A DNA stretch of 64,000 nucleotides from Hormiphora californensis (Eukaryota; Animalia; Ctenophora): positions 5,518,001-5,582,000 of the forward strand of contig CM035360.1 in assembly GCA_020137815.1 (NCBI GenBank), written 5' to 3'. Positions 1,986 to 42,530 of the stretch are shown here, piece by piece; the first letter of the stretch is position 1, and every line of letters begins with the position of its first letter. Under the pieces are notes generated by a model. That model was not told where the DNA came from. It ran no database searches and worked only from the letters and a program-made list of their open reading frames with translations. Position numbers and translations under genes: made by a program.

Positions 1986-2016
1986 ATAAAAACATTTTTG
2001 GTGCTGGCAATGTTAC

Positions 2017-22399: not shown

Positions 22400-22540
22400 A
22401 TTTTATCTCATGTTTCTCTCTTCCCCATCTTGATAATCTTATTACCTTTCACAGAGAGAGAGAGCTGGATTCTGGAAAGTGTCTCAAGTTACAGCACACC
22501 AAGATGTCACAGGTCACTGTCAGCAGTGTGTGTAGTAGAG

Positions 22541-22602
<62 letters not shown>

Positions 22603-22615
22603 GAGAGAGAGTTGA
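21445..22615. repeat. Cluster of (GA)n/(CT)n microsatellites
   Basis: Tracts at ~21445-21570, ~22310-22395 and ~22545-22610. They explain the SLSLSL/ERERER ORFs in the track. Confidence 0.95.
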
Positions 22616-24345
22616 GAGAGATCTTGAGTACCGGCCTCAATTCACTGTTTTTATCTCCCTGCTTGAAAAGGGTTAAACACACGCCACACGGACTGACACA
22701 CAGGAAGGACAGGCAAAGATTCTAGAAAAAACTGACAGAGAGACTCCAGGGAGTGATAATGAGAGAGATGTACAGACGAACACAGAGAGACAGGTGTTGT
22801 GCTAATAGAAGAATAGAATTAGCACACGTTGCATTACACTCACACTGACGGGACAGAATATCTGTCAGATTCACAAACATGGAACAGGTGGTGTCACATT
22901 GTGACGTCACACAGGTGTTGGACAAAAAAGAAGGAAGAGAGATACAAGAAACATAGAGACAGGGGAGGAATATAGACGTCACATTATGATGGTTTTAGAA
23001 CACGAGGGATATATTAGATCATTAGGAGTGGTTGGTATGGTTACGAATCATTAGAACGGCGGGATGAGGTCATGCATGATAATTGTCACAAGAGTAGGAG
23101 GCAGTTAAAAAAGCAAAAATAAAGAGCATGTAAAAACTAGTAAAAAGTACTAAAACGCTACTTTGAATTCTTGATTTAATTCTTTTACATTCCAAGTGAA
23201 AAACACAAGGTTTGTAAAAAAATGTCCCACCACATTCCCACAGGCACGGTAGTCCTGCACACCAAGAATCCAGAGTAGGTTTGAAAAGGTGTGAAGAAAA
23301 TAAAGCTCCTTCGTATGTCGAGAGGTTCCTGTGTCCCAGTATGGGACCGGACCCTTCACTCGAAACTCGGGGGCGAAAGTTATAAAATGTGGGGGTGTGA
23401 AGAGTACTCAAGCTTCGTCGCGGCGACGGTGCAGTTGGGTAGACGAGGAGGATGGCTACTTTTTGGCGAATCGACGGCGTATCGACGGAGGTGGTTTGTC
23501 CATTGCATATATCGTGTTCATAGTGCAGTGCCTTAAACAAATTGGGGGTAAACACTGACAAACAGGGGATTTGTGCGGAGGCCATGGAGAGATAGAGCCA
23601 GAGAGGAGAGATGGGGAGGAGGAGAAGTGTCCTACTTGGGTGGTAAAGTTGGTGAAGGTTGTAGAAGATCGCTGCGATGTGCGATGAAGGAAGGAGGGAC
23701 ACACACACGAACAGTCGGGTAGTTGTAGTAGGGGAGGAGGAGGAGGGGTCTGGCTGTATTCAGTCTCTTTTATCATTTCTTTCTCACTTCTTCTTCTTCT
23801 TCTTCGGGGGCGAGAGAGAAAAAGAGAGAGAAAGATGAGGAAACCCGGCATTATATCTCATCATCACCAACAAACCAACACGCATCTTTCTCAGTTGCCG
23901 CGACGAACGGAGGGGAGGTGTGATGATGTTGAGAAATATCTGGGCTCCAGAACACAGAGGGAGATAGTGGTAGAGATATAGAGGTATAATTGGAACACAG
24001 TAACAAGGCAGGGTGGGGTGCGATGGCAGCCGGGGGACCCTCTGGTGACATGCTGCAGGCTGCCGCTACTCGTCACGATCCCCCTCATGCATGCACCACC
24101 ACGGGGGAGGGATGAAGGAAGAGAGAGCATGTACAGAGAGAGTCTTATCATCATCATTATCACACACACAAACATAGTTATCATCAATTTAGTTCACAGT
24201 TCAACTTATACTACTACTTTACTCCTAATCTACAATTAAACCACTTTTATCAATTTGACGTTGCGAGTTCCCAGATATTTATAAAATCAAACAGTAACAG
24301 TGTGCGTGCGTTTCATCCCTAGGCTGGAAAATAGAAGGGGGGTTT

Positions 24346-27300
24346 GCCGAGAGCGCTCAGCTTGAGAAACTATGATAAAGTCGAGAACACTCGACGAAAC
24401 AGCAATCCTTTTCCCGATATTTGATAACCGAAAAGTGGCCACAATTATAACGATAGCATTTGATTTACACCAAGATCTTTAAACCTTCCCTCTCATCCTC
24501 CTGCTACAATCCCTCCCTGTCCCTTCTCTACACTACCTTCACACATAAAGAGGCCTTCTACAATTAAATATGAAGCCATTGAAATCAAGCACAGATAGTT
24601 CGACATAAAGGGCACGATGAACGCAGCTAGGGCTTAAATCACAATTTGGCCAGCTCAGAAGTCTCTCTTTCGCACGCTCACTTCACGGAATAGCATCTTG
24701 CTGCCGTACTACTCATATCGACCGGACTATATAGGGAATATATTTATATTATACCTGGTCTAAATGTCTACTAAGTTCTAATGGTGTCGAGAGGATACTC
24801 AACTAAAGGGTTTTGCCCCGGGTTTTGTGAAGTACCAAGACAAGCTTGGTTGCCGAGGGCACTCAGCTAGATACTTTATAAATTGTCGAGAGTGCTCGAC
24901 TACGACACTTCCGGAATATTAGAGGTGACCCCTTTTCTTGTTGAGGACACTCAACTAAACAGCTTCACAGACTGGTGAATCGCCCTTTTCAGCCCTTCTC
25001 AGGGTACCCCGGGCTGCACCTTTGAAGTACAGGTAGAACTACAGAATAGGTTGTCAGAACAGGATTTCATTAGGTCAGTAGGTTGGAGTAAACGGAGAGG
25101 GGTTCAGAAGGGTTTTCAGAAGGTTTATTTCAGAAATATCATCCCAGTGAAGGGTTACAGGAATTGGTCAGTACATCAAGCAGAAATTGCCGAGAACACT
25201 CAGCCATCGGGGAGTTGAGATTGCTCAACTTTGTAGAATATTGAGAACACTCAACTCAGTTCCCATGGAGGTAATTCCTCCGGTGTATTGGGAACAAATT
25301 TGTATGGATTGTTGAGAATACTCAACTGTTTAACTTGGTTGAGAACACTCAACTACCTCAGGCTTTCTGAGGGGTTTTAGCCCTTTTCTCGCGATCCCCT
25401 GAGTAGGGATCGGGAGTGCGTTGCTAGGATACTGAGAACACTCAGATAACTTATACCAGAACAGATACTATCTACCTTGGGGCCCAGTAGCAGTCTCATC
25501 GACATTGCCAGCTGGGTTATTGAGAATTCTCAACAATTTGATCTTGTACTGGATATTTGTCGAGAACACTCAACGCCATAGAACTGGCCAGAAACCTTTT
25601 TCCCGATTCTTTCGGCATTTGCCCTGAAAGAAGCTGGACTGTTGAGAGCACTCAACGAAGGATCAATAGAAATTTGGTCGAGAACACTCGCCTCGAGAAC
25701 ACTGCCACTGGCAGTGTTGCTCTGATTTTTCTTCGGTTGAGAATGCTCAACTATGGAACTTTTACGGAGTAATTCTCCAAATCTCCAAATCTCTCAGTGA
25801 GGAACACTCACCCTAGCACAAGCCGCTGGCTAAACACTAGAAACCTTTAAATCGAGAACACTCGACTAAATTCCTTAGCATTCTGTTCCAAGCTTGGAAC
25901 GAATCTGGTTGAGAATACTCAACTATTTTTGGTCCTTTTGGGATATAGCGCCAGTGCTGTGCATGTTGCGCTGTAGGGTGCTGCGTGTCCTCCAATGGTG
26001 GACAAGAAGAGAGATAGAGATAAAAGAAAGCGGAGATCGACGCCGTCGCAGCACGGGCCGATGAAATACCGCGATCAATTGCAGGCTGTTACCGTTGGGC
26101 GCTTGTCGCTGACAAGTTTTGAATTTGAAAGACCAGCCAATTCAAGTTTACCAACTTCCAGAGCCATACGTTCCGTTTGTAGGTCAATGGTGTAACTCTC
26201 TTCGATGTAGTGCGTGGACTCGGTGGCCAACAACACACTGAATGTAAACACCTAGCCTGTTTGTAAATCCCCGCTGGGATTACTAACATGTGACACATAT
26301 ATTGTAAGGTAGCCCGCCTGTGGCAGGCTGTGTCAAAATTGTTCATGGTTGTAAGGCTGTCAGGGTTTGAATTTGTTTTAGTCCGTTTTGCAATGTCCAT
26401 TTCGAAGCCATAAGACCCAGGGAAAGATGAAGACGACCAAGGACCGATCCAATATTCCACTTGCAATGTGCTACCGTAGTTGGCGAGAGGGGTAACCCGC
26501 CGGTTTCACATGATTGGCACGCGTTTCCAAGGCCACGTAATGGCACATCGCCAGCAAAGAATGACCGCATTTCATGCATGGCCGGGAACAGCAAGATGTT
26601 CAACGCAGCAGGTAAGACGGGATAAATTATTCTTCAGCGTAACACGTTGGGCCCAAAGCGACAATCGGGGTTCGCTCGAAATACACAAATCGGAAACACG
26701 GAAGTCCGTTATAAGCGGCGCAAAATCGTTGGGCTGTAGTTCCTATGAATGACATGCCAGGCAGCAGTTGATGTCGAGAACACTCGACTTTGTTTGGGGG
26801 AATAGATGTTTGTTGAGAGCACTCAACTAATAGGGTCCTTTTGTTTGGTATCAGGGGTTTGTATCTTCGAGCATTCTGCCGATGCTAGCCTTTCTGGGTA
26901 CCCCGATAAATCTGCGAGAGTAGTGCTGACACGTCTTCGAATTCAGTGTACTATCATGGTGAACGGTTACACATCCATTAGGGCTGACATGTACACACGT
27001 GCCGAGAGAGAGAGATAGAGAGGAGCTGATAATCCTAAAGGGGTGAAGATCAGCGTTGTGAGGGTATGTGTGAGAGAGAGAGTAATGCAAAGTGTGAGAT
27101 GTCATACCACGATATACCGTATACCAAAGAGGATGTGTTTCTGCTCCAAATTGTGCTTGTCCTCCATTTATGGGCTCGGGGGCCTAGTGTGCAACGGGAA
27201 TTTCCTGACGGTTATACCTCACTCTCTGTGGACCAACAGGACATTACATCAAACAATCGCTCTCTCATCACTTCTACCAGCAGGAATTGCTGAAACCCTG

Positions 27301-28240
27301 AAACAGCAACAGGGCTGACATCTCTCTCACAACTATTTAGTTAGTAACGGGAGTTTGCAGATACCAATACAATTATTCCACGGACACCACTTGTAATACT
27401 ATAACTGTGTGTAGTCAGAGATCTGAACATCACCATAAACCACGGACGGAGAGAGATCCATAAACACAGGACGGGGGGACATCACTATCTCTCTTGCTCT
27501 CACCATAACACCAGGGGGGACGGGACGACGTCTGTGCTGCCGAGAGTTCTCAGCTAATAGTAAAATAGAAGGGGTTGTCGGGAGCGCCCGACTGACTTGT
27601 GACCTTTTCAACGGAACCCTTGAGTAACACCGCGTGCAAACATACACATGGGGGCAGTCAACTAACGATCTCTCTCCCCACCACTGGACTACGACCTGGG
27701 ACGAGGGACAACAGGTATGTACATCTCTCTCCCGATATATTATCTCCCCGTGCGATCCACAGATCCTACATGAAGATGTTCACCTCTCTGGGCAGTGAAG
27801 GGGGTGTTGAGAGCGCTCAACTGGTTTGTGGGTTAGAAGATATATGAAGGTGTTGAGAACGCTCAACTAATATCCAACCTTTGCTAGTCGGTCTCTAACT
27901 TTAACCCCTCTTATCTCGTGCGATGTTGGTGCGATGCTTCCTCTTACATGGCGTTATCTTATCTCCCTAGCTCCCTCCTTCTCCAGATACTCCCCAAGTT
28001 TTGTGATGTTGAGAACTCTCAACTAATAAATTTGGTTTTAAAGTTTTGTCGAGAACACTCAACTGTCGTGGACCCTTTTCTTTTTTTTTCTTTCTCTCTT
28101 CCTTCTCCCCTCTTAGTAGCTAGATACATCTCTCTGTCAACCCGTCGCGTTATTATCTTCTGTCGAGAACGCTCGACTTAATTTTATAGATTTATAGAGG
28201 GCGTTGAGAACACTCAACTTGGATTGGGGGCCTTTTCTTT
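24346..28240 (-). other. Hairpin-motif block 1: ~30 copies of a 6-bp stem/4-nt loop element (minus-strand consensus GYYGAG-NRYY-CTCRRC), many linked to an upstream (G)AAAAG|G
   Basis: Copies at about 24346, 24380, 24786, 24852, 24885, 24940, 25189, 25214, 25240, 25311, 25338, 25431, 25519, 25559, 25641, 25677, 25736, 25796, 25851, 25908, 26773, 26812, 27538, 27577, 27806, 27852, 28008, 28048, 28162 and 28203. Flanks are non-homologous. Function is inferred, not shown. Confidence 0.85.
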
Positions 28241-29576
28241 CCCAGCACATATCAGCTCTCGGATAATCCCGGCTAGTCTCGCTCATATATATTCCCTGGT
28301 GACTGAGTAGTGTGTGCAGTATTTATGCTTCAGATATATCAGCGCCCCGCCCGGCTGTAAGTGGCGCAACTCTCTCCCAAGCGACAGATCTCTCATCATC
28401 AATCCAATACCCCTGCTGTGCACACAAAAGGTAGAAAGCAAGCCACACAATAAGATTGTTTTGTGAATCGATATAACATTGGATGAAGTTTGCGGCCGGC
28501 AGACGCACTTACCAAAAAAGTTAGGTTTATACGTCGAGCTTGCACGTGTCATATCGCACCGCAATTATCACATTTTCTAAACACCGAACCTGATGGATCC
28601 CTAGCTCCTCTCTCCCATCCCATGATGTTGATATCCCCTGCTGGTGAAACTGATCCTATGACCCCTCTCTACGGTAACAAATCTCCTTATAACCACCGTG
28701 TGTGTATCAGATGTCCGAGTTGTGCGAAAGAAATTGGTGAAAATTCTGAAATTTGAGTTGGTATTGAGCAGCGAAGAAAAATTTGTTGCCAAATCAACGT
28801 TGATAAGGAGTGCGATTCGGTCGGAGTGGTTGGTCCCACCTTCATACCTTAGTGCAATGAGTACAAGTCCCCTGTTTGATGGTTTAGTTTGAGCTCAGTG
28901 AAGAGAGATAAGAGAGCGAAGAAAATGTCGAAAACAGATCTGCTGGCAGCGTGGAAATGGTGCTCAGCGACACATGCACATGAAGCTGCGAACTCCGCAC
29001 TGTAAGAAAAGATGAAATGCTGAACTCTTGCTCTGAAAATGGTTGGGGAATTTTAGGTTTAGGCGTCAAATCACAGCTGTCGTTTTTGACATCAATGATC
29101 AATTGCATATCAAGGTGCATCAAATCTGACATTTAGTTACCATTTAGTGTGTCTAATTAGAGATGATGATGGCGCACTCTTAATCGACTTTGAATTTCAC
29201 TCCTTCAACTCTTGATCTTGTACGCGATGAAAACTATCTATCCACTACTCCTGACGACTGATACCCTGACATCCCTGATACCCGATTCATCGAACAATTT
29301 TCGAATCTGACTTCCGTTCAAATGCAAAGGTGATGGAATTTTCAACCAAATTTGACCTGAAAACATAACCATGCCATAGCCATAAATTCGATCTTGAAAA
29401 GGAGTAGTCGATAGAAATCGGAAATCGTTGCATACCTGAACCATCTGACCTCCAGTCACTGTTCTCCCTTCAACTTCACACACGTCTAATACACGTCCTG
29501 ATCCTATCGCTGTTCAGATTCTTTGTACTTGCTAGCACTATCGTCTTCATAAGAAAAGGAAGGGCAGTGGCGTTTC

Positions 29577-29960
29577 TTATCAGTGAAGGCAGCTAGGTAT
29601 TCTTTATCAGTGAAGGCAGCTAGGTATTCCTTATCAGTGGAGGCAGCTAGGTATTCCTTATCAGTGAAGGCAGCTAGGTATTCCTTATCAGTGAAGGCAG
29701 CTAGGTATTCCTTATCAGTGGAGGCAGCTAGGTATTCCTTATTAGTGAAGGCAGCTAGGTATTCCTTATCAATGAAGCCAGCTAGGTATTCCTTATCAGT
29801 GAAGGCAGCTAGGTATTCCTTATCAGTGAAGGCAGCTAGGTATTCCTTATCAGTGAAGGCAGCTAGGTATTCCTTATCAGTGAAGGCAGCTAGGTATTCC
29901 TTATCAGTGAAGGCAGCTAGGTATTTCTTATCAGTGAAGGCAGCTAGGTATTCCTTATCA
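29577..29960. repeat. 27-bp minisatellite, ~14 copies
   Basis: Unit TTATCAGTGAAGGCAGCTAGGTATTCC. It generates the spurious KAARYSLSV ORF. Confidence 0.95.
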
Positions 29961-30449
29961 GGTCCTTCTAAGGCAGTGCGTTGCGTCTACTTGATAACTT
30001 CAGCCAGGCCTGTTTAGGTGCAGTGCTGTTGGCGTTCAACTTGTGTAGACAAAAACCTGAGGAACAAAGATAATGTAGATGGTCTGGAGTCAAGATCATT
30101 CAGATTTCAAAAAGAACAAGATAAATCGTTTGTTTAGAAAGCCAGTTCTAGTACCTGTTAAAAAGAGGACCGGAGTAGTTTTCCCTTGCACGTGGTTAGA
30201 TCCTACAGGCGAATTATCACTCCCAATATCGATTCTACTTCTCTTGATCTTGTAACCCTCCAAACTTTGGATGCTGTAACAAAACCCCTCTCAGATGTTC
30301 TCCCCTGCGCTTTTCGTGACAGTCCTTATGTAGGGCGTAGGCCAATGAATACTTTCCAGACGTTTCATACAAATGTTACTGCACGTTTTCTATTTCTCTC
30401 ACAACTGGCAATTGGGTTTGTTTTTGGTGAACCGACACACAGGTTTTAC

Positions 30450-33400
30450 CATTGAAGATGTTGGTGGGAGCAGGTCTTACAACGAAGCTTTGTCGAACGC
30501 CCAAGTTGAATAAGGGAATGAAGCATGGTGGCATGTTTTCGGTTCAGTGTGTCTTACTCGTTCCTGTCAAACATAATTAGACCCACCCAGAACCCAGATG
30601 CAGAAACTTGAAGTCATCAGATTCAAAACTTACAGTGGAATCACATGCTGTTTATTGTCCGACTTTCCAGGCCTCATGTCCTACTCATGTTTCTGAAACC
30701 CCGTCCTATGCTTTTCTGGGAGATCCTAACAGTCCTCACACCGGCCTGCTAAACTGGTTATGGAATTCAAACACACACACAGGGCTCACCAATCGATCAA
30801 GCGGGTCTTGCATCGAAGCTTTGTCGAACGCCACATCACGAGATAGGGCAGTGCACTGGTACCAAGAGGTCTTTACAGTGGGATGGTTAGAAGGCTGACT
30901 TAGGTTCTGGTAAAGCTGTGTCTTATTCCCTGCAACTCAGTGAAAAAGGTTCACCCAACCCCACCCAGAAAGTCAAAGGATCGATCGCGATTACTCATAC
31001 CAGTGTTTCAAGAATTCCTTTCGTTGCAAGTTCGATGCGGATGTATCGGTGCTATCAACTCTCACGTGTGCCACGATTCAATTCTGTCAACAGGGTTATC
31101 CCACCCAACCCATGGAAAAGCGAGAAGAATGCAAGAGGAATCAATTGTAATCTAGGCACTTTACCGAACTCACGGGATCCAGTCAAATGGTACAGCAGTT
31201 GGGAATTACTTCGATTCAGTTGGTCCATACACGGCTAATCTTTGTACCCATTTTCAATCAACACTGTAACAGAGTGAACCCATTTCCCGCCCGAAGATCT
31301 GAGATTTAAATCAAGCATGGTTTTCTTAGCTGACTGCACGATGGAAGTAGGTGAAATAGGTCCTAGCTCCTGACGCTGTTTCATTCTGTTCAATATCTCG
31401 TCATTCTCATTCAGCTCTGCCAAAATGGTTAGCCCAAACCACCCGAGTTTTGAAATTGAAGGAGAGAGAAAATGTGAATCCAGTGAAACTCACAGGTCGA
31501 GGGAGAGATAATTGAAGCGGGTCTTACGACGAACTTTATCGAGTGCCATGGATCGGTGGGTAGAAATTCTGGGTTGTTCCTATTTCCGTCACTATTAGCT
31601 CTGTGAACATGGTTATAAGATCCCTTACCCTCCCCAAAAGTAGGTAGCCTATCGGATTGTGGTCGGTCGGTGTCCTTCCTTACTGTCACAGGTCACTTCA
31701 TCAAATTCCATGGATACTAACAGTCCAATTCGTAACATCCTACGTGATCTCTGTACGGCTCTGTCAACAAGGTTAGCCCAACCCATGCCCAGGGGAATGT
31801 TTAAGAGGGGGACGAAAATGGGAGAGATACCAGGTATATGGCTGATGATGATGGTAGAGAGAAGAAGGAAAACTGCGACGAACCCAGGAAATAGCCATCA
31901 TCATAACCTCTGATACTGCAATACAATCGTCTACGGTCTACTGTATGAATTTGCGTCACTAACAAGCTCTCGTCACTTAAGCTCTGCCAACAGGGTTAGA
32001 CCAAACCACCCGATTACCGAAAATATATGGGAAAATTTGCAGGGATTCCAGAAAAACTCACATTTCGAGGGAGAGAGAAAAGCCGGTGATCCTAAATGAT
32101 GGCTGTAGCCTGCAACTCCTATTTTAACTCGAATTCATCTGTTTTTACCGTGAATGAAGCGGGTCTTACGACGAACATTATCGAGTGCCATGGATAGGTG
32201 GGCAGAATTCCTTGATCGGGTAAATTTGTTCCTGTTTTTATCACTACCTGCTCTGTGAACACGGTTATAAGCCCCGTACCCTCCCCAAAAAGTGATGGCA
32301 GATGGATGCTTACTATCTTGGCAGGTCAATGTCCTTACTGTCATTTCTTCAACTTTCCAACGTGAACAAATCTCCGATTCGTAACATCCTACGTGATCTC
32401 TGTACGGCTCTGTCAACAAGGTTAGCCCAACCCATGCCCAGGGGAAGTTTAGAGGGGGGAAGTTAGAGGGATAAATGAGTTAGATACCGGATGATAGGCG
32501 TCAGGCGATGATGGTAGAGAAGGAAGAAGGAAGAACTGCGACGAACCCAGGAAATAGCCATCATCGGAAACCCTAATACTGCAAGACTGCTTTACACTCC
32601 TTTACACTCTACTGCTTAGTAACACTTCACTGTTTCATTCTGTTCTATCTCAGTTCAGTGCCATGTATCGGTGGGTAGAATTCCTGGATTGTTCCTATTT
32701 CCGTCACTATTAGCTCTGGGAACATGGTTATAAGACCCCTTACCCGCCCCAAAAGTAGGTAGCCTATCGGATTGTGGTCGGTCGGTCCTTCTCTTACTGC
32801 CACTTCATCAAATTCCACGGAGACTAACAGTCCAATTCGTAACATCCTACGTGATCTCAGTACGGCTCTGTCAACAAGGTTAGCCCAACCCATGCCCAGG
32901 GGGAAGTTTAGAGGGGAAGAAAATGGGAGAGATACCAGGTAGATGATAGGCGATGATGATGGTAGAGGGAAGAAGGAAAACTGCGACGAACCCAGGAAAT
33001 AGCCATCATCATAACCCCTGATACTGCAATACAATCGTCTACGGTCTACTGTATGAATTTGCGTCACTAACAAGCTCTCGTCACTTAAGCTCTGCCAACA
33101 GGGTTAGACCAAACCACCCAATTACCGAAAATATATGGGAAAATTTGCAGGGATTCCAGAAAAAAACTCACATTTCGAGGGAGAGAGAAAAGCCGTGATC
33201 CTAAATGATGGCTGTAGCCTGCAAATCCTATTTTAACTCGAATTCATCTGTTTTTACCGTGCTTGAAGCAGGTCTTACGACGAACAATATCGAGTGCCAT
33301 GGATAGGTGGGCAGAATTCCTTGATCGGGTAAATTTGTTCCTGTTTTTATCACTACCTGCTCTGTGAACACGGTTACAAGCCCCGTACCCTCCCCAAAAA

Positions 33401-36000
33401 GTGATGGCAGATGGATGCTTACTATCTTGGTAGGTCAATGTCCTTACTGTCATTTCTTCAACTCTCCAACGTGAACAACTCTCCGATTCGTAACATCTTA
33501 CGTGATCTCTGTACGGCTCTGTCAACAAGGTTAGCCCAACCCATGCCCAGGGGAAGTTTAGAGGGGGGAAGTTAGAGGGATAAATGAGATAGATACCGGA
33601 TGATAGGCGTCAGGCGATGATGGTAGAGAAGGAAGAAGGAAGAACTGCGACGAACCCAGGAAATAGCCATCATCGGAAACCCTAATACTGCAAGACTGCT
33701 TTACACTCCTCTACACTCTACTGCTTTGTAACACTTCACTGTTTCATTCTGTTCTATCTCAGTTCGCACGTCGTATTTAGCTCTGCCAACAAGGTTAAAC
33801 CAAACCACCCGATAATTACAGAGGATAGAAGAAAATGAGAGTGATTTCAGTTAAACTCACGATTCGAGGGAGAGAGAAAAGTTGGTATTGTAGGATCCTA
33901 GACGATAGTTGTGGCCTGCAAATTCTACTGTAACAGTCTCAAATTGTGGAGCAACACCGATCTGTTTCACTGTGATTGAGGCGGGTCTTACGTCGAACTT
34001 TATCGAGTGCCGTGGAACAGGCCAAGATGAAGAATAATGCATTTCAGTGTGTAGAATCAGATGAACTTTTTCGTACTTCTATCATTATCAGCTCTGTGAA
34101 CACGATTAGGCCCCAAAACCGACCCAAAAGAAGTGATTGATCTTACTATCTTGGTTGGTCCTTAGTGTCCTTACTGTCATTATATCTCCAACGTGATTAA
34201 CGTGCATACATCTCTCCGTTTCGTAACATCTTACGTGACCTCAGTACGGCTCTGTCAACAAGGTTAGCCCAACCCATGCCCAGGGGAAGTTTAGAGGGGA
34301 AGTTAGAAGGGGGAAGAAAGAGAGAGATACCGGATGATTGGCGAAGATGATGGTAGAGGAAGATGGTAGAATGATAAACTGCGACGAACCCAGGAAATAG
34401 CCATCACCGGAACCCCTCTAAGCTAAGACTGCTCCATACTTCATAATCGTCTGCTGAACTGCATGGCTTTGTGACACAGGGTTGATCATACTTAGTAGTG
34501 GATTCAGGCGGGTCTTATAACGATTCCTTGTCGAATGCCTTTCAGTGCAGTGGGATGGGGTAGCGGCCAGCGTGCAGTTATTTGGTGGGTGGTTAGTTAT
34601 CAAGCACGTTTCAACTGTTATCACCTTCGTGAACAGGGTTAGCCCTATACCCTCCCCAGAATATCAATTGAATTTGTTAGCCTAGCTTCTAGTCACTGTG
34701 AGAAATATGCTCGCCTGCTCAGATGGTTGGAGAGAATACAACTTCTTCATTTCCTTACTGGTCCCAGATGAATGCCCCAGCTGTCTTTGGAATCTCCCAA
34801 CGTGTTCAACTCTGACAAAAAGGATTAGCCAAGCCCTTAGCCCACCCAGAGAAGAAAGCATTACCAATATCATAGGGGAGATATACCCTTAGCTGCAAGC
34901 TGTTGTTATAGCAGATCTTATCAGTGCAATCCCTGTTCAATATCCTCTATCCAACTAACTGAGGCCAGGTATTTCCAGAGATATGAAGACAAGGCAATGA
35001 CGACTTTTATTCGTGGCTGATCCGTGATCGTTTGCAACACCACTTTCTCACTCTTTCATCTGACAACAAAGTTAGAAAACACCCACAGCCCAATCATCAA
35101 TGAAGTTACCAGACAGCTACAGTCAGAACTCAGAGAGGAGCGAAGTCACTTTTCTTCATACTGCCGGTACCTTCCCAACCTTGTTAGCTCACTCTGTCGT
35201 TCACAACGTTCTGTCAAAAGGGGTTAGCCCTACCCACCAATGAGAGATAAGAATGTAGACGATAGACTTACTTATGTCAGTGCTGTTCATCAATTGGTGC
35301 GATATTCAGTACAAGCGAGTTGTCTTAGCAGTCCTAACTGTTTAACGATCAGCAATGAAACGCAGGTTGGTTGTATGGCGTGCTTCTACCTGGTTCCATT
35401 TCAGTATAATACGCTTCACCTCTGTGGAACACGGTTAACCCAACCCGCCCAGGAAATGATGGAAGAGTTGAAGTAGAAGAGAAATGGATGATGAATGATG
35501 GTTACCAGTTGGATGACGATGATCTGCGATGTCCTATGCCTGTATTTCTAATCTTCATAGATCTTTATACCGAATCTGATGGGCTGGTTTAGATGATACA
35601 CGTATTTAACCAAGGTTTAGATGCAGTGGGTTAACGGACTAGTCTTGTGTCCTTTTCAGATAATGTAGTATTTTGCTTGACAGACAATGATAAATGCCGT
35701 ACCGCATAACCTGTACTGTCAAATATCGGTTAGTAGCCCAACCCCGCCCAGACGATCCTCATTCCCAGCAACCAAATTATAGACGTCTTTTTAGAAAACT
35801 ACGAACCTCATCAGGCTAATTTCAGAGATGTCTTACAATCAATTTCCGGATGTCATCCTAATAGTAAGGACAGGTCTTACAACGAATCTTTGTCGAACGC
35901 CACATCGCAAGCTCAGCATCGTAGGGTCCTATTGCTTTTACTCCAACAGCTCTGCCAAATAGGGTTAGCCAATCCCGCCCAGAAAACTTCAAATTGATGT
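30450..36000 (-). other. Tandem array of ~24 short exon-like cassettes (G-rich + CTAAC branchpoint + CAG|AG acceptor; GTAAG/GTGAG/GTAGG donors)
   Basis: Plus-strand motif CTCTGYSAAMANGGTTAGCCCAACCC (minus: GGGTTGGGCTAACCTTGTTGACAG|AG) recurs every ~150-350 bp. Donor-like GGTCTTAC, GTCCTTAC, CATCYTAC and AAACTCAC motifs lie between copies. The core (31400-34400) is a three-cassette unit repeated ~5 times. Confidence 0.7.
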
Positions 36001-36903
36001 GAGGAAGGTGGCATAAAAGTTGAATATTTCCAAATTCCAGAGGATAATTATCCTTGTCTGGCCAGTGCCGTAATTTGCAAGAGACTTGGGAAATGCTATC
36101 GAGCGTGTCTAATTTTCTGTTTCCTCTTAGGGCACGTGTCAACTCCGATCGCGGTGCATGCTGATTTGTGGACAACTCCGTGACAGGCAAAATGCGTCTA
36201 TTGCGAAAGGGATAAACCTGAAAAGGGATTGGAGAGCTAACGCAGTGATACTTTGAAAAAAAAAACAACTAACGATTAAGACCATTTATTATTACACCAA
36301 ACTAAGACTTTGCAATTTACCTTGAACAGGTATTCAAATTATTCCGGGAAGCGATCTAACTTTAATTTGTAATCTTTAATTTCTTGGTTCTGAAAATAAA
36401 GCCGATATAAAACATGCGAGGACTATGAAATAAGAGAGATTGGAGTGACCAAAAGTTTATGAAAATATGAAAAGTGGGAAACAGAATATTACCTAGATAT
36501 GATGGATTCCGTCACTCCAAAGGCTGATATTTTATCGCATGGCAGTTTGCTCGAAGATGAGTGCAGATACATTCATGTTCCTGATACCAGTTCAGTGCAA
36601 TCTCAGAATCACCCAACAGATGCTTCCCATACAACACCCCAGTCCTGATCCTTACAAATGTCGGAAAGCAATCCCGGTGGTGGTGGTGGCTCGCTAGAGA
36701 ACATTACGCGAGGGTGCTCACAAAAATTGTTTAAACTAGAAACTGACATGCTTGCGACGAAGATAGAAGGCATTAGAATTAGAAGTCAGCATATTTAGCC
36801 CAATGGAGATGTCGAATGAATGTCAGCTTAAATTAAACACATGGAAATTAGGGAGGCCGAGAACATGCAATTAGTGCATATAATATGTAGGGGGAGGTAA
36901 GTT

Positions 36904-39900
36904 AGTGAGGACACTCACTTGGTTCGAGAACACTCGACGCACCTTTTCAGCCTTATGCCAACCAGACGCAAAGGCAACCAAGCACACAGCATAGCTCTAG
37001 GCTACCGGCTATCAAGCCCCAATCACCACATGGATATATGAAACCACAGCGTAGAGGAGAGCTTAGAACCCGCTGACAGCTACAGGTTGCCTTCGGATCC
37101 AGCTATTCAGGCCCCAGAAATCTGGCTGTAGAAAACAATGAAAAGAAAGAAAGTGTTTGGGTGGTGAGAGCGCTCACCTGGAGTCGAGAACACTCGACGT
37201 TACCTTTTCTTGGCCTTTTCTTTTATTATAACTGATGGTCAGTTATCCATGACCAGGATTTAACACTATCAGTATCGGGCGTCCGAAGGTCTATAGCAGC
37301 TCTCAAGCTCCGCTAAACTGTGCCATATCACAAACTCAAGTCGTGGTTTATCAAGTTGTGGCAGGTAACAGCTCGCGATAATACCAAGACGTTCACTATC
37401 GACCAACGGCAAGTTATTCTGTAAAGAGTATCAGCACTGATTCTCTGCTCGACTAATATTAATATTTCTCGTGTCTAAAATACGGCTGCACAATATAATT
37501 GTAATACACGTATTATTAGCCGTTATCGGGCGGATAAGTATTTAGACTAGGGGCTAAGCCCACAACTTTTCTACTGATGTTACGAAATATTGACCGGAAT
37601 TCGGACATTACACAACAGTGTGCAAAAACAGCCACACAGTGTGGATCAGATTCACATAAGGCATACCAAACATTGGTAGCATTTCTGAACATCGCAAAGC
37701 GATTCAATATTTCGAATAATATGAGCACACAGACTCAACTCACTTCAACTGAGTGGTATCATTGGACGCTACGAAGGCGTAAACATTTTCACTACAAGCG
37801 ACTGTAGCTGTCAGAAATACACGTTAAAATAACCTTGAAGGATCAAATACCTTCACAATTTTGCTCGCATAGCGGCTGACTGAACATTCAGGTTGTTATC
37901 ACAGACCTCTGTACGGGTGGTAGAATTTTAGTGGGGAGGCAAGTACGCTTGCAATAGTAGCTGTCACGACGTCACGCTGAGGTGGTTAGGCCACTGAAAG
38001 AAGTTCAACTTTTATCAACCCCCTTTAAAACATTAAACTACAGATACTTCATTACCAATTAGCTTACGGCTTGGTTGCTGAGAGTGCTCAGCTGAGAATA
38101 TAGATGGATGTTGAGAACACTCAACTGCCAATATGTGACCTTTTCTTGCCACTAAGGCTTCATGAGATAATGTAGAACGGGCCGTGTTAGTCAGGCACTG
38201 TAGGTTGAGTGTTGCGGATATATAAACTTGCATGCTGGATATTATGGCATGTTCCAAATTTTCCTCAAATTTCCTCTCCTAAGAGGTTTAAAGTATGTCA
38301 AGAATTTGTGTCAGTGTACACTGTATTTTCATTTTCCCTCACTCAAACAGTGGGCCTCATAAACTCTCAAGAGTCATGTCAGATACTTATTTCGTTTGGG
38401 TCGAGAGCACTCGACAGAGATAGAGCCTTTTCGGGGTGGCGCTATGTCGGGTTGGAAAGGCTGGAAGTGGGCGAATGGATACGGCAAGTAGTGGTTGAAG
38501 GTGGTTACAGCGAGGAGGACAGGCGAACGTTTGATTGCAGGGATGTGTAGCGGGGTGTCTGCTTGAAGGCGATTGAACACACACACTGGAAAAATGGATT
38601 GCATGGTGTCAGAGGTGGATATATAAAAGAGTTGGCTGTACTTGCCGAACTGATACACACAATATTACCAGACTTATCTGGGTTGGGCATGAGCTGTCAT
38701 GGTGGCTGTTGCTGTGTTTGGGCTCCTAGAGCTGCACTGATTGGTTGTCGGCTGTGTTGGCCTTCTCAGAACCTGCTGAGAGCACTTTGAAAAGAAGGTT
38801 TTAAAACACTGCATGTCTGATACATGGTTACCACGCTATACCCAAAGCCCTGAATGGTTGAAGGATAGTCGCTGTAAATTTTCCTATCACACAAGTGTGT
38901 TCTGTGGTCCAGGGCTATCCAGCGGGGCCATTAAATGCCAGCGCCTGACAGAAAAAGGAAAGAGATATAGGAGGCTTATCGTCAGCTTGCCACTCATGAA
39001 AGCAATTAATTTTTTGTTCAGATTAAAAATGAACTACCTATCCTATTCTTACTGTACGTTGAGAACTCTCAACTGTTTGTTTGGGCGAGTTGATCATATG
39101 CTGAGAACACTCAGCTGAGCTTGGACCTTTTTGAAAATGCCAGAGCGGCAGAGCCAGGGTCAAAGAATACATTGGAACGGCAGCGGGGAGAGAGAACATA
39201 ACTCGTAAGCAGTAGAACATGTGCACTGAAGGGGATACACCAAGTTAACATTTAATGACGAGCAGGGGCAAGCATAGATACATGTGGGTTACCTCGAATA
39301 TATATATATAGTTACCCAACGGTATTACTTATTGTACACTCTGTGCAGTAGACGAATCACTCTTTATCACTAGGTCTTCTGTTTGCTACAACACTCTCCA
39401 GATAGACAAATATAGATGTATCAAGCCCCAAAATAACGGTTCCTTTCGGAGGTAGAACAACAAACCATGTGTAATATATTTATCACGTGTTGAGAGTGCT
39501 CAACTTTGAACTAGATTTACATAGAGGTTGTGTTGGGAGCGCCCAACTAGATCACAACGGTGGGCCTTTTCGTTTAGATTTTAGAGAGATCTCAAACGGT
39601 AGCTTCCTGCTTCACATGAACCGGTCTGTAAACAGAGAAAGATCGAAAACAGAATGTGATGTTTTAGTTGACCACGGGTGGTTGTGTGTTGCAGGGAAGG
39701 GCGGGTTTCCAAATGCCAATCATAAAATAGTACTTAGAATTTGAAACCACTGATTGATTTGCGGCAGTAATGCAGTTATATGATAGATGCATAAGAAGTG
39801 TAGCGCAGGTCCAACAGGTATAAATCAAACCGTCCAGGCATAGAAATATATATAGAGAGAGATAGATAGAGTTCTGTAACGAGAGAGAGAGATATAGATA

Positions 39901-41198
39901 CATATTTATATATAGATGGCAGCCATCGAGGGTTTTAACTCGCTGCTGAGAACTCTCAGCTTGTCGTGGGGGCCTTTTCCTCTGAACCAGGAGAGTTCAG
40001 GTAACATGCATGCAACACGAAACAGCTCGGGATGGAGATATGGAGGCGATAAAGAGAGGTGGATTGAGTCACAGGTGTTTCAACAGCTATCATACGCTTT
40101 TTTTTCTCTCGCTTATCAGGAATTGGCACATCTCAGATCTGATCAACGCAAAGGGGGATGAAAGTTACCAGGATCACACAATGAGGTGAGAGTGGGGGCC
40201 CATGCGGCTACAATTGCTGCTCTGTGTATGTTGCCTGGGAATAGTGTTTCTGACAGATAAAAGCTGGTAAAAAGTATGGCCCCGTTTTGGAGATGATGAT
40301 GATTATTGATAAATACACGCTGCAACATTACCAAATCGAAGGGGGAAGAGTGAAAACATCTACCACAGCTCATCTAACCTTGCGGAGGCGGGAATCAAAA
40401 GAGCAGCCTGGGAGAAATAGAGATATATTCTCACGTATACACTGATATAGAGATAGAGTGGACATTTATATATCTGACTCCACGGGGGAGGAGGGTGCTC
40501 GCTAAGAAATATATCATCACGGTTGTATCTGAATTTAGCCACTTCAATATTAATCTGATGGATACATGTGCTGCACAGATCAGATGGGGGAGAGATAACT
40601 CACAACCAGCGGGTCCATGCATGCGCCTAGATCTCTCTTGTTATCTTTCTGCTGTTATATCTTTACACTATATCTTTGTTATATATCATGCTCTTCAGAC
40701 GACGGTAGAGATACGTATATCTATATATTATGTTTATTATAATTCCATATATTATATTTCTTTGTGCTGATCTCTGTAAGAGATGATTGAATATATGCCG
40801 AGAACGCTCAGCTGTAATTGTGGGCCTTTTCATTTAAAGGAATATAAAAATTCTAAGAACATACCCCTGCACACACGGCGTGCTCACTGATCCAGAAACA
40901 GAGACTGAAAAAGGATTTCGTAAGGACGATATAAGGAAGTTACAATTTCAGGATTTAAATTTAGATCTGCGATAAGATTTCAGATATTTCAAAAGGATTA
41001 TAGATCGATAGACTTCAACTTTCAATTTCACGAGACAAAAACAAGACCAAACTTTCTCTGGAAGTCACAAAAACAAAGTTACCCCATTTTCGTTAACTCA
41101 CGCTCTTCTCATACTTTTGTCATCATATTATATCGATATTATATATATTGTATATTTGGATTGTTAGTGTCGAGAACACTCGACGATGATACCTTTTC
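36904..41198 (-). other. Hairpin-motif block 2: ~14 copies, nearly all linked to GAAAAG|G
   Basis: Copies at about 36904, 36923, 37163, 37183, 38077, 38110, 38400, 39058, 39100, 39489, 39532, 39945, 40797 and 41169. On the plus strand each single copy or pair is followed by CCTTTT(C) within ~2-18 nt. Confidence 0.85.
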
Positions 41199-41289
41199 TC
41201 GTATAAAAATGATCTGAAACACCCGATAAAAACACCCCCGTTCGTGCTTCCATCTCCAAAAATCAATTTCGACCAAAATCAGAAGAAGA

Positions 41290-41870
41290 GAAAAACATTC
41301 GCTCGAACACGCGTGTACCGGTACATGCGCGACGATATTGCGAAACACTCACAGCGCGAATAATAAATGGGTGTGGATACCCCAGACAATCACAAAACAC
41401 TGCTTCCATTAACTATCAGGTTCATCACATATCACGAGAAGAATAATAGCATAACAAACATAATCATGTGATTTTAGCGTGTATCAGTCTGTCAGTTTGT
41501 GTGTGTGATTTTAGCTGCTGGTGAAACAAAACATAGCGAGACGGAGAGATAATGATGTTGAAGAAATTACACATGCCTCTAGAGGCTTTAGATCACGCTC
41601 ACGTGGGGTCACATGACACAAAGCACATGACAAATGTAAGCCAATTAGAGCACGATTCGAGAGCACATGACACAAGAACACACACAAAGAAACGAGCACG
41701 AGAAGACAGTGGACGCGTTAGAACAGGTCACGAGGTATCGCTCGACGTCAAGGGCAACCTCTTGCGGAGGAGATCTGGCATGAGATTTCAAATAATAAAT
41801 CACAGCGCGCAGCTGCGCGCTACAATCTACGAATTGCGCGTCACTATCATTTGACGCCGCGCAATAAAAG
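41290..41870. promoter_or_regulatory. CpG/CGCG-rich intergenic segment, possible (bidirectional) promoter
   Basis: Local enrichment of GCGC/CGCG between the last hairpin block and VPS33. Inferred from composition and position only. Confidence 0.3.
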
Positions 41871-42530
41871 TTACATTTTCATTTCTCAAATTCACTTTTT
41901 TTTAAATCAAAATTTGAAATTCTGGAAAGTTTTGTTCGAGCCTCTCTTGGCTCTCGAGAGACCCTCAGTGGTCATCCATACCCAGCACAATGTTGCGTTT
42001 ACTTTCTACTGAATGATAGATTTAATAAGTGGAATGTTTAAAGTCTGGAATTTTTTTAAAGATCGGAGCCACCCTCCCTGCAGGGAGTGGTACTGGTTAT
42101 GGGAGTGCGAACGAGATTCCTGATATTTGACGAATGAAATACTCATCCGTGCCGACGATGCACAGGCGCCCTAAGTAAGGGCCCCTTACCGATACCAAAT
42201 CAAGCGTTCTGGACTTTTGTATGATCGAGGGCTAATTTATTAACAATTTAATTTATTCTTTTTTTAGTGTTTTTAATAAGTTGTGTTTTGAAGTTGCTCC
42301 GGTTGTTGCGAGCAAATATTTCCTGAAGTTCATAAAGACAATGTAATCCACTTGAGAAAGTGATACTTTAGAGAGTGCGTTGGCACCATTTTTCTGGGTA
42401 TATATTCACTATTGAGTGGGATATTAAGTGCATAATTTACATTTACATTTACATACATTGCAATTTTCCAAAAAGAGTTGAAAAGTGCCAAAGTGGCAGG
42501 CTGTACTCAACTTTTGAAACATTTTAGCTG

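Follow-up and report, generated by a model that had tools for sequence, protein, structure and literature searches.

A ctenophore non-coding RNA gene of about 18 kb studded with a small RNA hairpin that recurs in retrotransposons

An approximately 18-kb spliced, non-coding, single-copy gene of a ctenophore, very probably Hormiphora californensis, whose published spliced leader (PMC8527503) occurs 627 times in the genome, carries 42 copies of one small RNA stem-loop on its transcribed strand. The same stem-loop is found in arrays of 5-7 copies just 3' of the stop codon of pol in Ty3/gypsy elements and of ORF2 in a LINE of this genome, on their sense strands, which suggests that an as yet unidentified RNA-binding factor is shared by host and mobile elements. 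The analysed window comprises 64,000 nucleotides (contig CM035360.1 of assembly GCA_020137815.1, positions 5,518,001 to 5,582,000), to which the coordinates of the locus refer. While the motif, its orientation, its covariation, its presence in a spliced RNA and in retroelement 3' UTRs, and the conservation of the module in a second species have been observed, the factor itself and the consequences of binding are inferred, and the overall reading is held with no more than moderate confidence.

Results

Sequence, orientation and covariation of the hairpin

The element consists of an A, a 6-bp stem GYYGAG/CUCRRC enclosing a 4-nt loop (mostly UGUU; Y-R-Y-U), and a further A, with G-poor flanks. 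The pattern GYYGAGNNNNCTCRRC gives 32 exact matches in the window, all of them between 24346 and 41184 and on the + strand, whereas none appeared in 100 dinucleotide-preserving shuffles. Upon inclusion of variant stems, 42 hairpins are counted at 24346-28218 and 36904-41184, all in one orientation, of which 29 have six Watson-Crick (WC) pairs, 10 have one G·U that exists only on the minus strand and 3 have one mismatch, while none has a wobble that exists only on the plus strand. The variant stems listed in the initial annotation (plus-strand forms GGTGAG/CTCACC at 37163, AGTGAG/CTCACT at 36904, GTTGGG/CCCAAC at 39532, GTCGGG/CCCGAC at 27577, and GCTGAG/CTCAGC) are all present. Read on the minus strand, the hairpins are the following.

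41169..41184 (-), GUCGAG-UGUU-CUCGAC, 6 WC
40797..40812 (-), GCUGAG-CGUU-CUCGGC, U·G at pair 3
39945..39960 (-), GCUGAG-AGUU-CUCAGC, 6 WC
39532..39547 (-), GUUGGG-CGCU-CCCAAC, 6 WC, compensated pair 5
39489..39504 (-), GUUGAG-CACU-CUCAAC, 6 WC
39100..39115 (-), GCUGAG-UGUU-CUCAGC, 6 WC
39058..39073 (-), GUUGAG-AGUU-CUCAAC, 6 WC
38400..38415 (-), GUCGAG-UGCU-CUCGAC, 6 WC
38110..38125 (-), GUUGAG-UGUU-CUCAAC, 6 WC
38077..38092 (-), GCUGAG-CACU-CUCAGC, 6 WC
37183..37198 (-), GUCGAG-UGUU-CUCGAC, 6 WC
37163..37178 (-), GGUGAG-CGCU-CUCACC, 6 WC, compensated pair 2
36923..36938 (-), GUCGAG-UGUU-CUCGAA, mismatch at pair 1
36904..36919 (-), AGUGAG-UGUC-CUCACU, 6 WC, compensated pairs 1-2
28203..28218 (-), GUUGAG-UGUU-CUCAAC, 6 WC, folds as predicted
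28162..28177 (-), GUCGAG-CGUU-CUCGAC, 6 WC
28048..28063 (-), GUUGAG-UGUU-CUCGAC, U·G at pair 3
28008..28023 (-), GUUGAG-AGUU-CUCAAC, 6 WC
27852..27867 (-), GUUGAG-CGUU-CUCAAC, 6 WC
27806..27821 (-), GUUGAG-CGCU-CUCAAC, 6 WC
27577..27592 (-), GUCGGG-CGCU-CCCGAC, 6 WC, compensated pair 5
27539..27554 (-), GCUGAG-AACU-CUCGGC, U·G at pair 3
26812..26827 (-), GUUGAG-UGCU-CUCAAC, 6 WC
26773..26788 (-), GUCGAG-UGUU-CUCGAC, 6 WC
25908..25923 (-), GUUGAG-UAUU-CUCAAC, 6 WC
25851..25866 (-), GUCGAG-UGUU-CUCGAU, G·U at pair 1
25736..25751 (-), GUUGAG-CAUU-CUCAAC, 6 WC
25677..25692 (-), GGCGAG-UGUU-CUCGAC, mismatch at pair 2
25641..25656 (-), GUUGAG-UGCU-CUCAAC, 6 WC
25559..25574 (-), GUUGAG-UGUU-CUCGAC, U·G at pair 3
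25519..25534 (-), GUUGAG-AAUU-CUCAAU, G·U at pair 1
25431..25446 (-), UCUGAG-UGUU-CUCAGU, mismatch at pair 1
25338..25353 (-), GUUGAG-UGUU-CUCAAC, 6 WC
25311..25326 (-), GUUGAG-UAUU-CUCAAC, 6 WC
25240..25255 (-), GUUGAG-UGUU-CUCAAU, G·U at pair 1
25214..25229 (-), GUUGAG-CAAU-CUCAAC, 6 WC
25189..25204 (-), GCUGAG-UGUU-CUCGGC, U·G at pair 3
24940..24955 (-), GUUGAG-UGUC-CUCAAC, 6 WC
24885..24900 (-), GUCGAG-CACU-CUCGAC, 6 WC
24852..24867 (-), GCUGAG-UGCC-CUCGGC, U·G at pair 3
24380..24395 (-), GUCGAG-UGUU-CUCGAC, 6 WC
24346..24361 (-), GCUGAG-CGCU-CUCGGC, U·G at pair 3

To avoid selection bias, sites were also picked by the core GAGNNNTCTC alone, which gives 39 minus-sense sites in the locus and 4 in the other 47 kb. 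The three outer pairs of these sites are paired in 111 of 117 cells, compared with 94 +/- 2 in 10,000 shuffles, with pair 3-14 reading C-G 10, U-A 21, U·G 6 and C·A 0. Equally, in an alignment of 62 hairpin sequences 98.9% of cells are paired, 4 of 6 pairs change on both sides, and 26 cells are compensatory against 6.9 +/- 1.9 in shuffles, a value reached by 0 of 500 shuffles, although the copies are related by duplication and shuffle tests thus overstate their independence. The stems are only 6 bp, and while the hairpins form in minimum-free-energy folds of the units, local folds of host units are only modestly better than shuffles (z -0.45 to -1.9) and neighbouring hairpins can also pair with each other in some of these folds. 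The two hairpins of a pair often have different stems, each compensated internally, with pairing within hairpins in 249 of 252 cases and pairing between neighbours in 229 of 252. The element matches no Rfam family and is distinct from the histone stem-loop.

Modular organisation and transcription of the locus

In the host gene the hairpins come as modules composed of GAAAAGG, 3-30 nt, hairpin 1, usually followed after 3-55 nt by hairpin 2, with 21 adjacent pairs having gaps of 3-55 nt. Of the 21 minus-sense AAAAGG in the locus, 20 are followed by a hairpin within 30 nt. The AAAAGG boxes are located as follows.

41192..41197 (-), 7 nt 5' of hairpin 41169
40825..40830 (-), 12 nt 5' of hairpin 40797
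39973..39978 (-), 12 nt 5' of hairpin 39945
39565..39570 (-), 17 nt 5' of hairpin 39532
39126..39131 (-), 10 nt 5' of hairpin 39100
38426..38431 (-), 10 nt 5' of hairpin 38400
38139..38144 (-), 13 nt 5' of hairpin 38110
37203..37219 (-), two boxes (37219, 37208) 5' of hairpin 37183
36942..36947 (-), 3 nt 5' of hairpin 36923
28231..28236 (-), 12 nt 5' of hairpin 28203
28074..28079 (-), 10 nt 5' of hairpin 28048
27603..27608 (-), 10 nt 5' of hairpin 27577
26837..26842 (-), 9 nt 5' of hairpin 26812
25934..25939 (-), 10 nt 5' of hairpin 25908
25595..25600 (-), 20 nt 5' of hairpin 25559
25382..25387 (-), 28 nt 5' of hairpin 25338
24984..24989 (-), 28 nt 5' of hairpin 24940
24931..24936 (-), 30 nt 5' of hairpin 24885
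24407..24412 (-), 11 nt 5' of hairpin 24380

The two hairpin clusters flank an array of other repeated cassettes, and the locus as a whole is organised as follows.

23100..41600 (-), approximate extent of the non-coding transcription unit; both limits are inferred, with the start upstream of 41532 and the likely last exon near 23150-23260
36904..41184 (-), hairpin cluster I with 14 hairpins and 10 GAAAAGG boxes, inside a long unspliced exon of at least 5 kb
36390..36492 (-), 103-nt GT-AG intron, removed in RNA contigs of three runs (joint 36389/36493, ends CT..AC on the + strand)
36331..36389 (-), 59-nt exon, followed by the donor caag/gtaaat
30931..35990 (-), array of about 14-20 cassettes carrying GGGYGGG..GGCUAACCnUGUUGnCAG/AGC, which looks like a branch point plus acceptor; the motif is found nowhere else in the genome
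29576..29961 (strand not assigned), 27-nt tandem repeat of 14.3 copies between the cassette array and cluster II
24346..28218 (-), hairpin cluster II with 28 hairpins and 10 GAAAAGG boxes
23221..23268 (-), conserved single-copy element preceded by a good 3' splice site

RNA contigs assembled from marine metatranscriptomes hold 36493-41300 unspliced, joined to two GT-AG introns that read on the minus strand. One such contig of 5059 nt (X7 record 26) runs contiguously over 36493-41300 with the 103-nt intron removed, while a second donor lies at 36331, where loose ends are seen, and RNA contig coverage reaches to about 41532. The hairpins therefore lie on the transcribed strand of a spliced RNA. 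These contigs, many of them 3-10% divergent from the reference, do not, however, represent reads of this animal, and transcription of cluster II rests on one contig from the 27.8-kb unit in an oligo-dT RNA run and on a metagenome contig from another species (L038, below). The neighbouring genes are on the + strand.

Occurrence in retrotransposons and in a second species

The initial annotation had noted no copies outside 24.3-41.2 kb, which is true for the window but not for the genome. Genome-wide, GYYGAGYRYTCTCRRC occurs 80 times, compared with 2 in the reversed control, with 26 occurrences in this locus and nearly all the rest inside retrotransposon copies. In a LINE (L016; ORF 1324-4872) the hairpin array begins 4 nt after the stop. 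In a Ty3/gypsy element (gypsy A, L012), the pol ORF of which has protease, reverse transcriptase, RNase H and integrase domains, the array lies 160-500 nt after the stop, and in a further element (gypsy D, L022) it follows the integrase ORF, with further copies in L245 and L246. The U·G wobble is on the sense strand in all gypsy arrays, whereas one hairpin of the LINE array has a C·A mismatch on the sense strand. Host and retroelement copies share extended flanks, CCCMAAMCAA-hairpin-AAC, and sense-strand matches are much better than antisense ones. On the other hand, an intron of a plus-strand gene 0.93 Mb away (L244) has AAAAGG-hairpin units whose loops are inverted relative to the box.

The metagenome contig L038 (GC 35%) has three modules of the form AAAAGG-N7-8-hairpin-N15-36-hairpin. 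It also has an 88% match to 23221-23268 of the window in the same order and orientation, an element of which it has two copies, while everything else between the two sequences has diverged.

Discussion

The element is best explained as a new cis-acting RNA stem-loop, with each hairpin most likely a binding site for one trans-acting RNA-binding factor that reads both sequence and shape, although this mechanism is inferred and neither a factor nor binding has been demonstrated. The host RNA would then be a platform with many binding sites, a scaffold or a sponge, and the retroelements would carry the same sites to recruit the factor to their unspliced genomic RNA for export, protection from decay, translation or packaging.

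The core inference of the initial annotation, a selected single-stranded structure (RNA, or possibly ssDNA) read on the minus strand, is supported by the covariation and one-sided G·U bias, which hold even when sites are picked by the core alone, by the RNA contigs with minus-strand introns that contain the whole 36.5-41.3 kb cluster, by the location of the hairpin on the ORF sense strand of retrotransposons and by the preservation of the module in a contig from another species with otherwise diverged sequence. RNA is therefore favoured over ssDNA. The proposed binding of a protein, perhaps as a dimer, remains an inference, and the variable gap of 3-55 nt between paired hairpins does not argue for a rigid dimer. 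The GAAAAGG box, the retrotransposon copies and the occurrence of the motif beyond this locus had been missed. The locus is not repeat debris and not coding, as its DNA is single-copy in the genome, it holds no remnants of transposable-element proteins and no ORF has a Pfam domain.

Hairpin inventory and pairing

Within the analysed interval, positions 5518001-5582000 of contig C11 in a 110.69-Mb assembly of 45 contigs, all perfect 6-N4-6 inverted repeats of the GNNGRG type lie at 24380-28218 and 36904-41184. The pattern GYYGAGNNNNCTCRRC gives 32 matches against 0 in 100 shuffles, and allowing variant stems gives 42 hairpins, every one of which has the same orientation. Read on the minus strand, the loop is Y-R-Y-U, with UGUU observed 16 times, followed by CGCU, CGUU, AGUU, CACU, UGCU and others. 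Of the 42 copies, 29 have six Watson-Crick pairs, 10 have one G·U that exists only on the minus strand, 3 have one mismatch and none has a wobble that exists only on the plus strand.

To avoid choosing sites by their pairing, sites were picked by the core GAGNNNTCTC alone, which gives 39 minus-sense sites in the 17-kb locus and 4 in the remaining 47 kb. The three outer pairs, which played no part in the choice, are paired in 111 of 117 cells, against 94 +/- 2 in 10,000 shuffles, with pair 2-15 reading U-A 28, C-G 8, G-C 2 and pair 3-14 reading C-G 10, U-A 21, U·G 6, C·A 0. Although CpG decay could turn GUCGAG/CUCGAC into GUUGAG/CUCAAC, it would produce the C·A intermediate as often as the U·G one, and the C·A intermediate is absent. 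Equally, on an alignment of 62 hairpins from the host locus, the other-species metagenome contig L038 and three element families, 98.9% of cells pair, four of six pairs change on both sides and 26 cells are compensatory against 6.9 +/- 1.9 in shuffles, while sliding the 3' partner by one to three columns drops pairing to 35-48%. The copies are related by duplication, and these figures thus overstate independence; the spacers, however, cannot be aligned. Any two copies of a palindrome can pair with each other, and some minimum-free-energy folds of units do so. However, in 15 of 21 adjacent pairs the two stems differ and each is compensated internally, with pairing within hairpins in 249 of 252 cells and between neighbours in 229 of 252, which favours local hairpins.

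Transcription and organization of the locus

The sequencing runs that contain this DNA are seawater and marine metatranscriptomes and metagenomes. A 5059-nt contig (record 26 of run X7, a DNase-treated metatranscriptome) covers 36493-41300 without a break and extends about 230 nt beyond. It subsequently skips 36390-36492, the ends of which are CT..AC on the plus strand and thus GT..AG on the minus strand, preceded there by uuuauuuucag, continues through 36389-36331 and leaves the reference at a caag|gtaaat donor. The same joint is present in two further runs, X1 and X5. A spliced minus-strand RNA therefore contains all of cluster I as one long exon of at least 5 kb, while for cluster II an oligo-dT run (X10) holds a contig whose loose ends match the 27.8-kb unit. 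As these are assembled contigs, several of them 3-10% divergent from the reference, they show presence and strand but not abundance. The features of the locus and its surroundings are as follows.

roughly 41.6 kb down to 23.1 kb, minus strand: the transcription unit, which stands alone
36904-41184, minus strand: hairpin cluster I
36390-36492, minus strand: intron removed in the RNA contigs
36389-36331, minus strand: exonic sequence ending at a caag|gtaaat donor
30931-35990, minus strand: about 14-20 repeated cassettes with GGGYGGG..GGCUAACCnUGUUGnCAG|AGC
29576-29961: 27-nt tandem repeat, 14.3 copies with 96% matches
24346-28218, minus strand: hairpin cluster II
23221-23268, minus strand: element of roughly 45 nt, GACUnCnGUGCCUGUGGGAAUGUGGUGGGACAUU, probably a conserved exon of the same non-coding gene
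8728-10536, minus strand: 602-aa ORF upstream of the Helitron-type ORF
5110-8217, minus strand: Helitron-type Rep/PIF1-helicase ORF of 1035 aa, unrelated to the hairpins

No ORF on either strand of 23-42 kb has a Pfam domain and no long ORFs are present, which does not support a coding repeat such as leucine-rich repeats. The 212-aa ORF at 23070-23708 is not conserved in the other-species contig beyond one nucleotide element. Furthermore, 4 kb of cluster II and 6.2 kb of the middle region are single-copy in the genome, and a tblastn search with the LINE and gypsy proteins finds nothing in the window. The flanking genes, a coiled-coil/kinesin-tail gene up to about 20 kb and a Sec1-family gene from about 43 kb, are on the plus strand.

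On the minus strand, 20 of the 21 AAAAGG in the locus are followed within 30 nt by a hairpin, with a gap of mostly 7-17 nt. The box is usually G-AAAAGG-N-C, nothing upstream of it is conserved, and a second hairpin often follows after 3-55 nt. The bases just 5' and just 3' of the stem are mostly A (33 of 42 and 30 of 42), and the flanks hold 12% G against 22% in the locus overall, the effective motif therefore being A-stem-loop-stem-A in a G-poor, presumably unpaired, context. The cassettes between the clusters, which look like a branch point plus acceptor, include 1.1-kb duplicated blocks and a 60-nt inverted repeat GGCGAUGAUGG...CCAUCAUCG, and their 20-nt core occurs nowhere else in the genome. 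The 27-nt tandem repeat, which lies between the cassette array and cluster II, creates a spurious 144-aa ORF on the plus strand and is the only sequence to qualify as a tandem repeat or satellite.

Occurrence in retroelements and in another species

Genome-wide, GYYGAGYRYTCTCRRC occurs 80 times, against 2 in the reversed control, with 26 of the occurrences in this locus. A covariance model of the hairpin finds 146 matches at E up to 1, a lower bound as only 150 candidates were scored. A LINE (families B and C; copies L016-L021, L247 and L248) has a 1182-aa endonuclease and reverse-transcriptase ORF that ends at position 4872 of L016 and is followed 4 nt later by an array of 5-6 hairpins, with a tail of short repeats near 5800. 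Proteins related to this LINE at 43-89% identity exist in other species, including Mnemiopsis at 43%. In Ty3/gypsy family A (copies L012-L015 and L246), the pol ORF carries protease, reverse transcriptase, RNase H and integrase domains, and a 61-nt tandem array of hairpins lies 160-500 nt after the pol stop. Ty3/gypsy family D (copies L022, L023 and L245) is 77% identical to family A in the reverse transcriptase region, and its own array follows the integrase ORF. In every case the array is on the ORF sense strand. All gypsy hairpins read GUUGAG...CUCGAC there, a U·G wobble that would be C·A on the other strand, while one LINE hairpin, the single exception, has a C·A on the sense strand. Sense-strand comparison of the element UTRs with the locus shows shared flanks (CCCMAAMCAA-hairpin-AAC; best E 2e-4), whereas antisense comparison gives only chance-level hits. 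On the other hand, an intron of a plus-strand protein-coding gene 0.93 Mb away (L244, C11:6472600-6478600, positions 2770-3090) holds three or four AAAAGG-N8-11-hairpin units with loops AACA, UACA and AAUU, which are inverted relative to the main locus; the units resemble the antisense strand of the gypsy-A 3' UTR array.

A scan of JGI metagenome contigs for two hairpins 36-66 nt apart returned 120 loci, nearly all of them an unrelated perfect palindrome, GTTGAGCCGGCTCAAC or GTTGAGAATTCTCAAC. Many contigs from a few samples carry clusters of the perfect 16-bp palindrome GTTGAGCCGGCTCAAC at about 35-95 nt spacing, a different repeat from unidentified organisms. The one relevant contig, L038 (Ga0314705_10000902, 4167 nt, GC 35%), has three modules, AAAAGG-N7-8-hairpin-N15-36-hairpin, all on one strand. 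About 1.6 kb downstream on that strand, at 293-343 and 449-491, it has two copies of the roughly 45-nt element, which match window 23221-23268 at 88% (E 5e-10) in the same order and orientation as here, while nothing else aligns. The element is single-copy in this genome and is preceded in all three copies by a good 3' splice site. L038 is read as the orthologous gene of a different species, in which the box, both hairpins and their order have been kept while the spacers diverged completely. A scan of viral contigs gave single chance or phage matches only.

Interpretation and alternative explanations

A strand-specific, covarying RNA hairpin with conserved loop and flanks is thus present 42 times in a host non-coding locus and in arrays directly after the last ORF of two unrelated retroelement classes. 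It is inferred, with a likelihood only somewhat better than even, that the hairpin is the binding site of one trans-acting factor, as a 6-bp hairpin is too weak to act through stability and its loop and flanking A's are conserved as in protein-recognised stem-loops. The shared use by a LINE and by LTR elements points to a host factor that acts on long unspliced RNAs, for which export, protection of RNAs with long 3' UTRs from decay, translation, localisation or packaging are candidate roles, none of them likely when taken singly. The host RNA with its many spaced sites would be a scaffold or sponge for this factor. The motif has covariation support in a phylum where almost no regulatory RNA is known, and its link between a host non-coding RNA and the 3' UTRs of two unrelated retrotransposon classes suggests a shared RNA-binding pathway. 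Knowledge of the factor would show how ctenophore retroelements handle their unspliced RNA and what a repeat-built non-coding RNA does in one of the earliest-branching animal lineages, and would also give a compact, portable RNA tag for work in ctenophores. A more far-reaching possibility, considered unlikely on present evidence, is that the long non-coding RNA evolved as a decoy or hub that titrates or sequesters the factor on which LINE and Ty3/gypsy RNAs depend, or the elements' own RNA-binding proteins, as an RNA-sponge arm of transposon control or of germline RNA handling.

Alternatively, though unlikely, the hairpin might be recognised by a retroelement-encoded protein, such as LINE ORF2p or its C-terminal CCHC knuckle or gypsy Gag nucleocapsid, as a cis-preference, packaging or template-recognition signal, with the host RNA as a decoy that soaks up this protein and restricts retrotransposition. 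The arrays indeed sit immediately after the stop codon of the LINE ORF, which ends in a CCHC motif, and of gypsy pol, where a newly made protein could bind its own RNA; LINEs of the stringent type are known to need a 3' stem-loop (PMC5135761), and the host locus has far more copies than any single element. However, sharing between two unrelated element classes is easier to explain by one host factor, the LINE array lies about 450-950 nt from the 3' tail and not next to it, no retrocopies of the host locus exist, and the host module with its own GAAAAGG box is conserved in a second species. That the locus is an old, functionless pile-up of fragments of retroelement 3' UTR arrays, for example from heavily 5'-truncated insertions, which happens to be transcribed and in which only mutationally robust palindromes are still recognisable, appears improbable. 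The hairpin and its C/A-rich flanks are shared with the element arrays and the intronic site L244 looks like an antisense fragment of a gypsy-A array, but the locus is single-copy, has no remnants of transposable-element proteins and shares nothing beyond about 30 nt with the element UTRs. In addition, all 42 copies have one orientation, compensatory stem changes and the absence of C·A argue for continued selection, the GAAAAGG box is tied to the hairpins here but is not part of the sense-strand element units, and the module is kept in another species although the spacers have diverged beyond alignment.

Equally doubtful is a role in splicing, in which GAAAAG|G would be a non-canonical 5' splice site and the hairpins just downstream would control its use, for instance in the choice among many alternative 5' exons that join the downstream cassette acceptors. 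The association of box and hairpin, the reading AAAAG|GU of all three boxes in L038 and the about 14-20 acceptor-like CUAAC...CAG|AG cassettes in the middle of the gene are in line with this view. On the other hand, the base after G|G is U, C, G or A in this genome and positions +3 to +6 show no donor consensus, while real donors here read GUAA. The 4.8-kb RNA contig is unspliced across all ten boxes of cluster I while a nearby canonical intron is removed, and the retroelement arrays have the hairpin without the box. Least likely, the 16-mers might be double-stranded DNA palindromes bound by a dimeric DNA-binding protein, as a cluster of enhancer or insulator sites, or products of palindrome-correcting template switching with no role in RNA. 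A near-perfect inverted repeat with a 4-bp spacer is found in many dimer binding sites, arrays of binding sites are known in the untranslated regions of LTR elements, and template switching can make the two arms match. Selection on half-sites, however, would not favour the same rare change in both arms, as seen at pair 2-15, which shows no U·G or C·A. The wobble pairs are all on one strand, which is the transcribed or sense strand in the host gene and in every gypsy array, and the asymmetric loop keeps one orientation in 42 of 42 host copies.

Comparison with known RNA elements

No Rfam family reaches a gathering score, with only sub-threshold hits at E up to 10, and no tRNA or tmRNA was found. 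A bacterial or organelle repeat is excluded as the window is from a 110.7-Mb eukaryote. A stem-loop in the 3' UTR of stringent-type LINEs, shared with partner SINEs as in eel UnaL2 (PMC5135761), is likewise a conserved structure also found in other RNAs, but those stem-loops occur once and lie next to the 3' terminal repeats. In the LINE copy L016, the array is at 4876-5370 and the tail repeats are near 5800-5830, and the hairpin is also present in LTR elements, which do not use target-primed reverse transcription. The constitutive transport element (CTE) of simple retroviruses, the direct repeats of Rous sarcoma virus and the CTE in NXF1 intron 10 may offer a parallel, in that a structured RNA element between the last ORF and the 3' end of a retroelement appears to recruit a host factor to unspliced RNA and a host gene seems to use the same element on an RNA that retains an intron. 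The position is comparable, as the array in the gypsy A copy L012 is at 4694-5032, between the pol stop (5195) and the element's end (3414), on the sense strand, and that in the gypsy D copy L022 follows the integrase ORF. However, the CTE is probably a stem of about 150 nt with internal loops in one or two copies, while here a 6-bp hairpin with a tetraloop, 16 nt in length, occurs in arrays of 5-7 in the elements or 42 in the host. Repeat-built long non-coding RNAs such as roX with its roX boxes, Xist with its A-repeat hairpins and NORAD with its Pumilio sites presumably also consist in their conserved parts of many copies of one short protein-binding motif between drifting spacers, but show no sequence relation to the present RNA, and a link to retroelement 3' UTRs does not seem to be a feature of them.

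Competing RNA pairing of the Dscam docking/selector type does not fit, as compensation is within each 16-mer and pairing between copies is poorer than within them. Equally, the absence of transposable-element protein remnants, the single-copy DNA and the sense orientation of the hairpins do not fit a uni-strand piRNA cluster, although without small-RNA data. A Helitron 3' terminal hairpin is not indicated, as the copies lie in retrotransposon UTRs and in a unique transcribed locus, no CTRR end follows them, and the Helitron ORF at 5110-8217 has only a chance 2-mismatch site. The published spliced leader of Hormiphora californensis (PMC8527503) occurs 627 times in this genome and 0 times in the reversed control, but no copy is present in the window, where the best match has 3 mismatches in 17. 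Six genomic copies of the 44-nt leader inspected on contig C1 (L024-L029) are followed by unrelated sequence and only one by GU, and most of the roughly 630 copies therefore look like retro-copied 5' ends of trans-spliced mRNAs or parts of other elements, not leader-RNA genes.

The nearest known architecture is the histone mRNA 3' stem-loop (Rfam RF00032) bound by SLBP, with a 6-bp stem, a 4-nt pyrimidine-rich loop, an A-rich 5' flank and an A/C-rich 3' flank, both being short hairpins that are probably read by a protein rather than acting through stability. The similarity is one of geometry only. The stem sequence differs (GYYGAG against GGCUUU), the second loop base is a purine, the element occurs in 42 internal copies in a non-coding RNA rather than once at an mRNA 3' end, and the purine box GAAAAGG lies 5', not 3', of the hairpin. 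RF00032 finds 38 sites over its cut-off (34 bits), all in histone clusters on contigs C2, C3, C4, C7 and C9, and none in 22500-42000 even at E up to 10. An SLBP paralogue as binder was not supported, as only one gene with an SLBP RNA-binding domain is detectable. In the histone clusters inspected on C3, C4 and C9 (L249-L252), this ctenophore's own histone stem-loop, which a strict bilaterian-style pattern missed, reads CAAAA-GGCUUU-UUUC-AAAGCC and is followed, after ACCCAAAUAU, by AAAAAGAAAC, the presumed U7-binding element.
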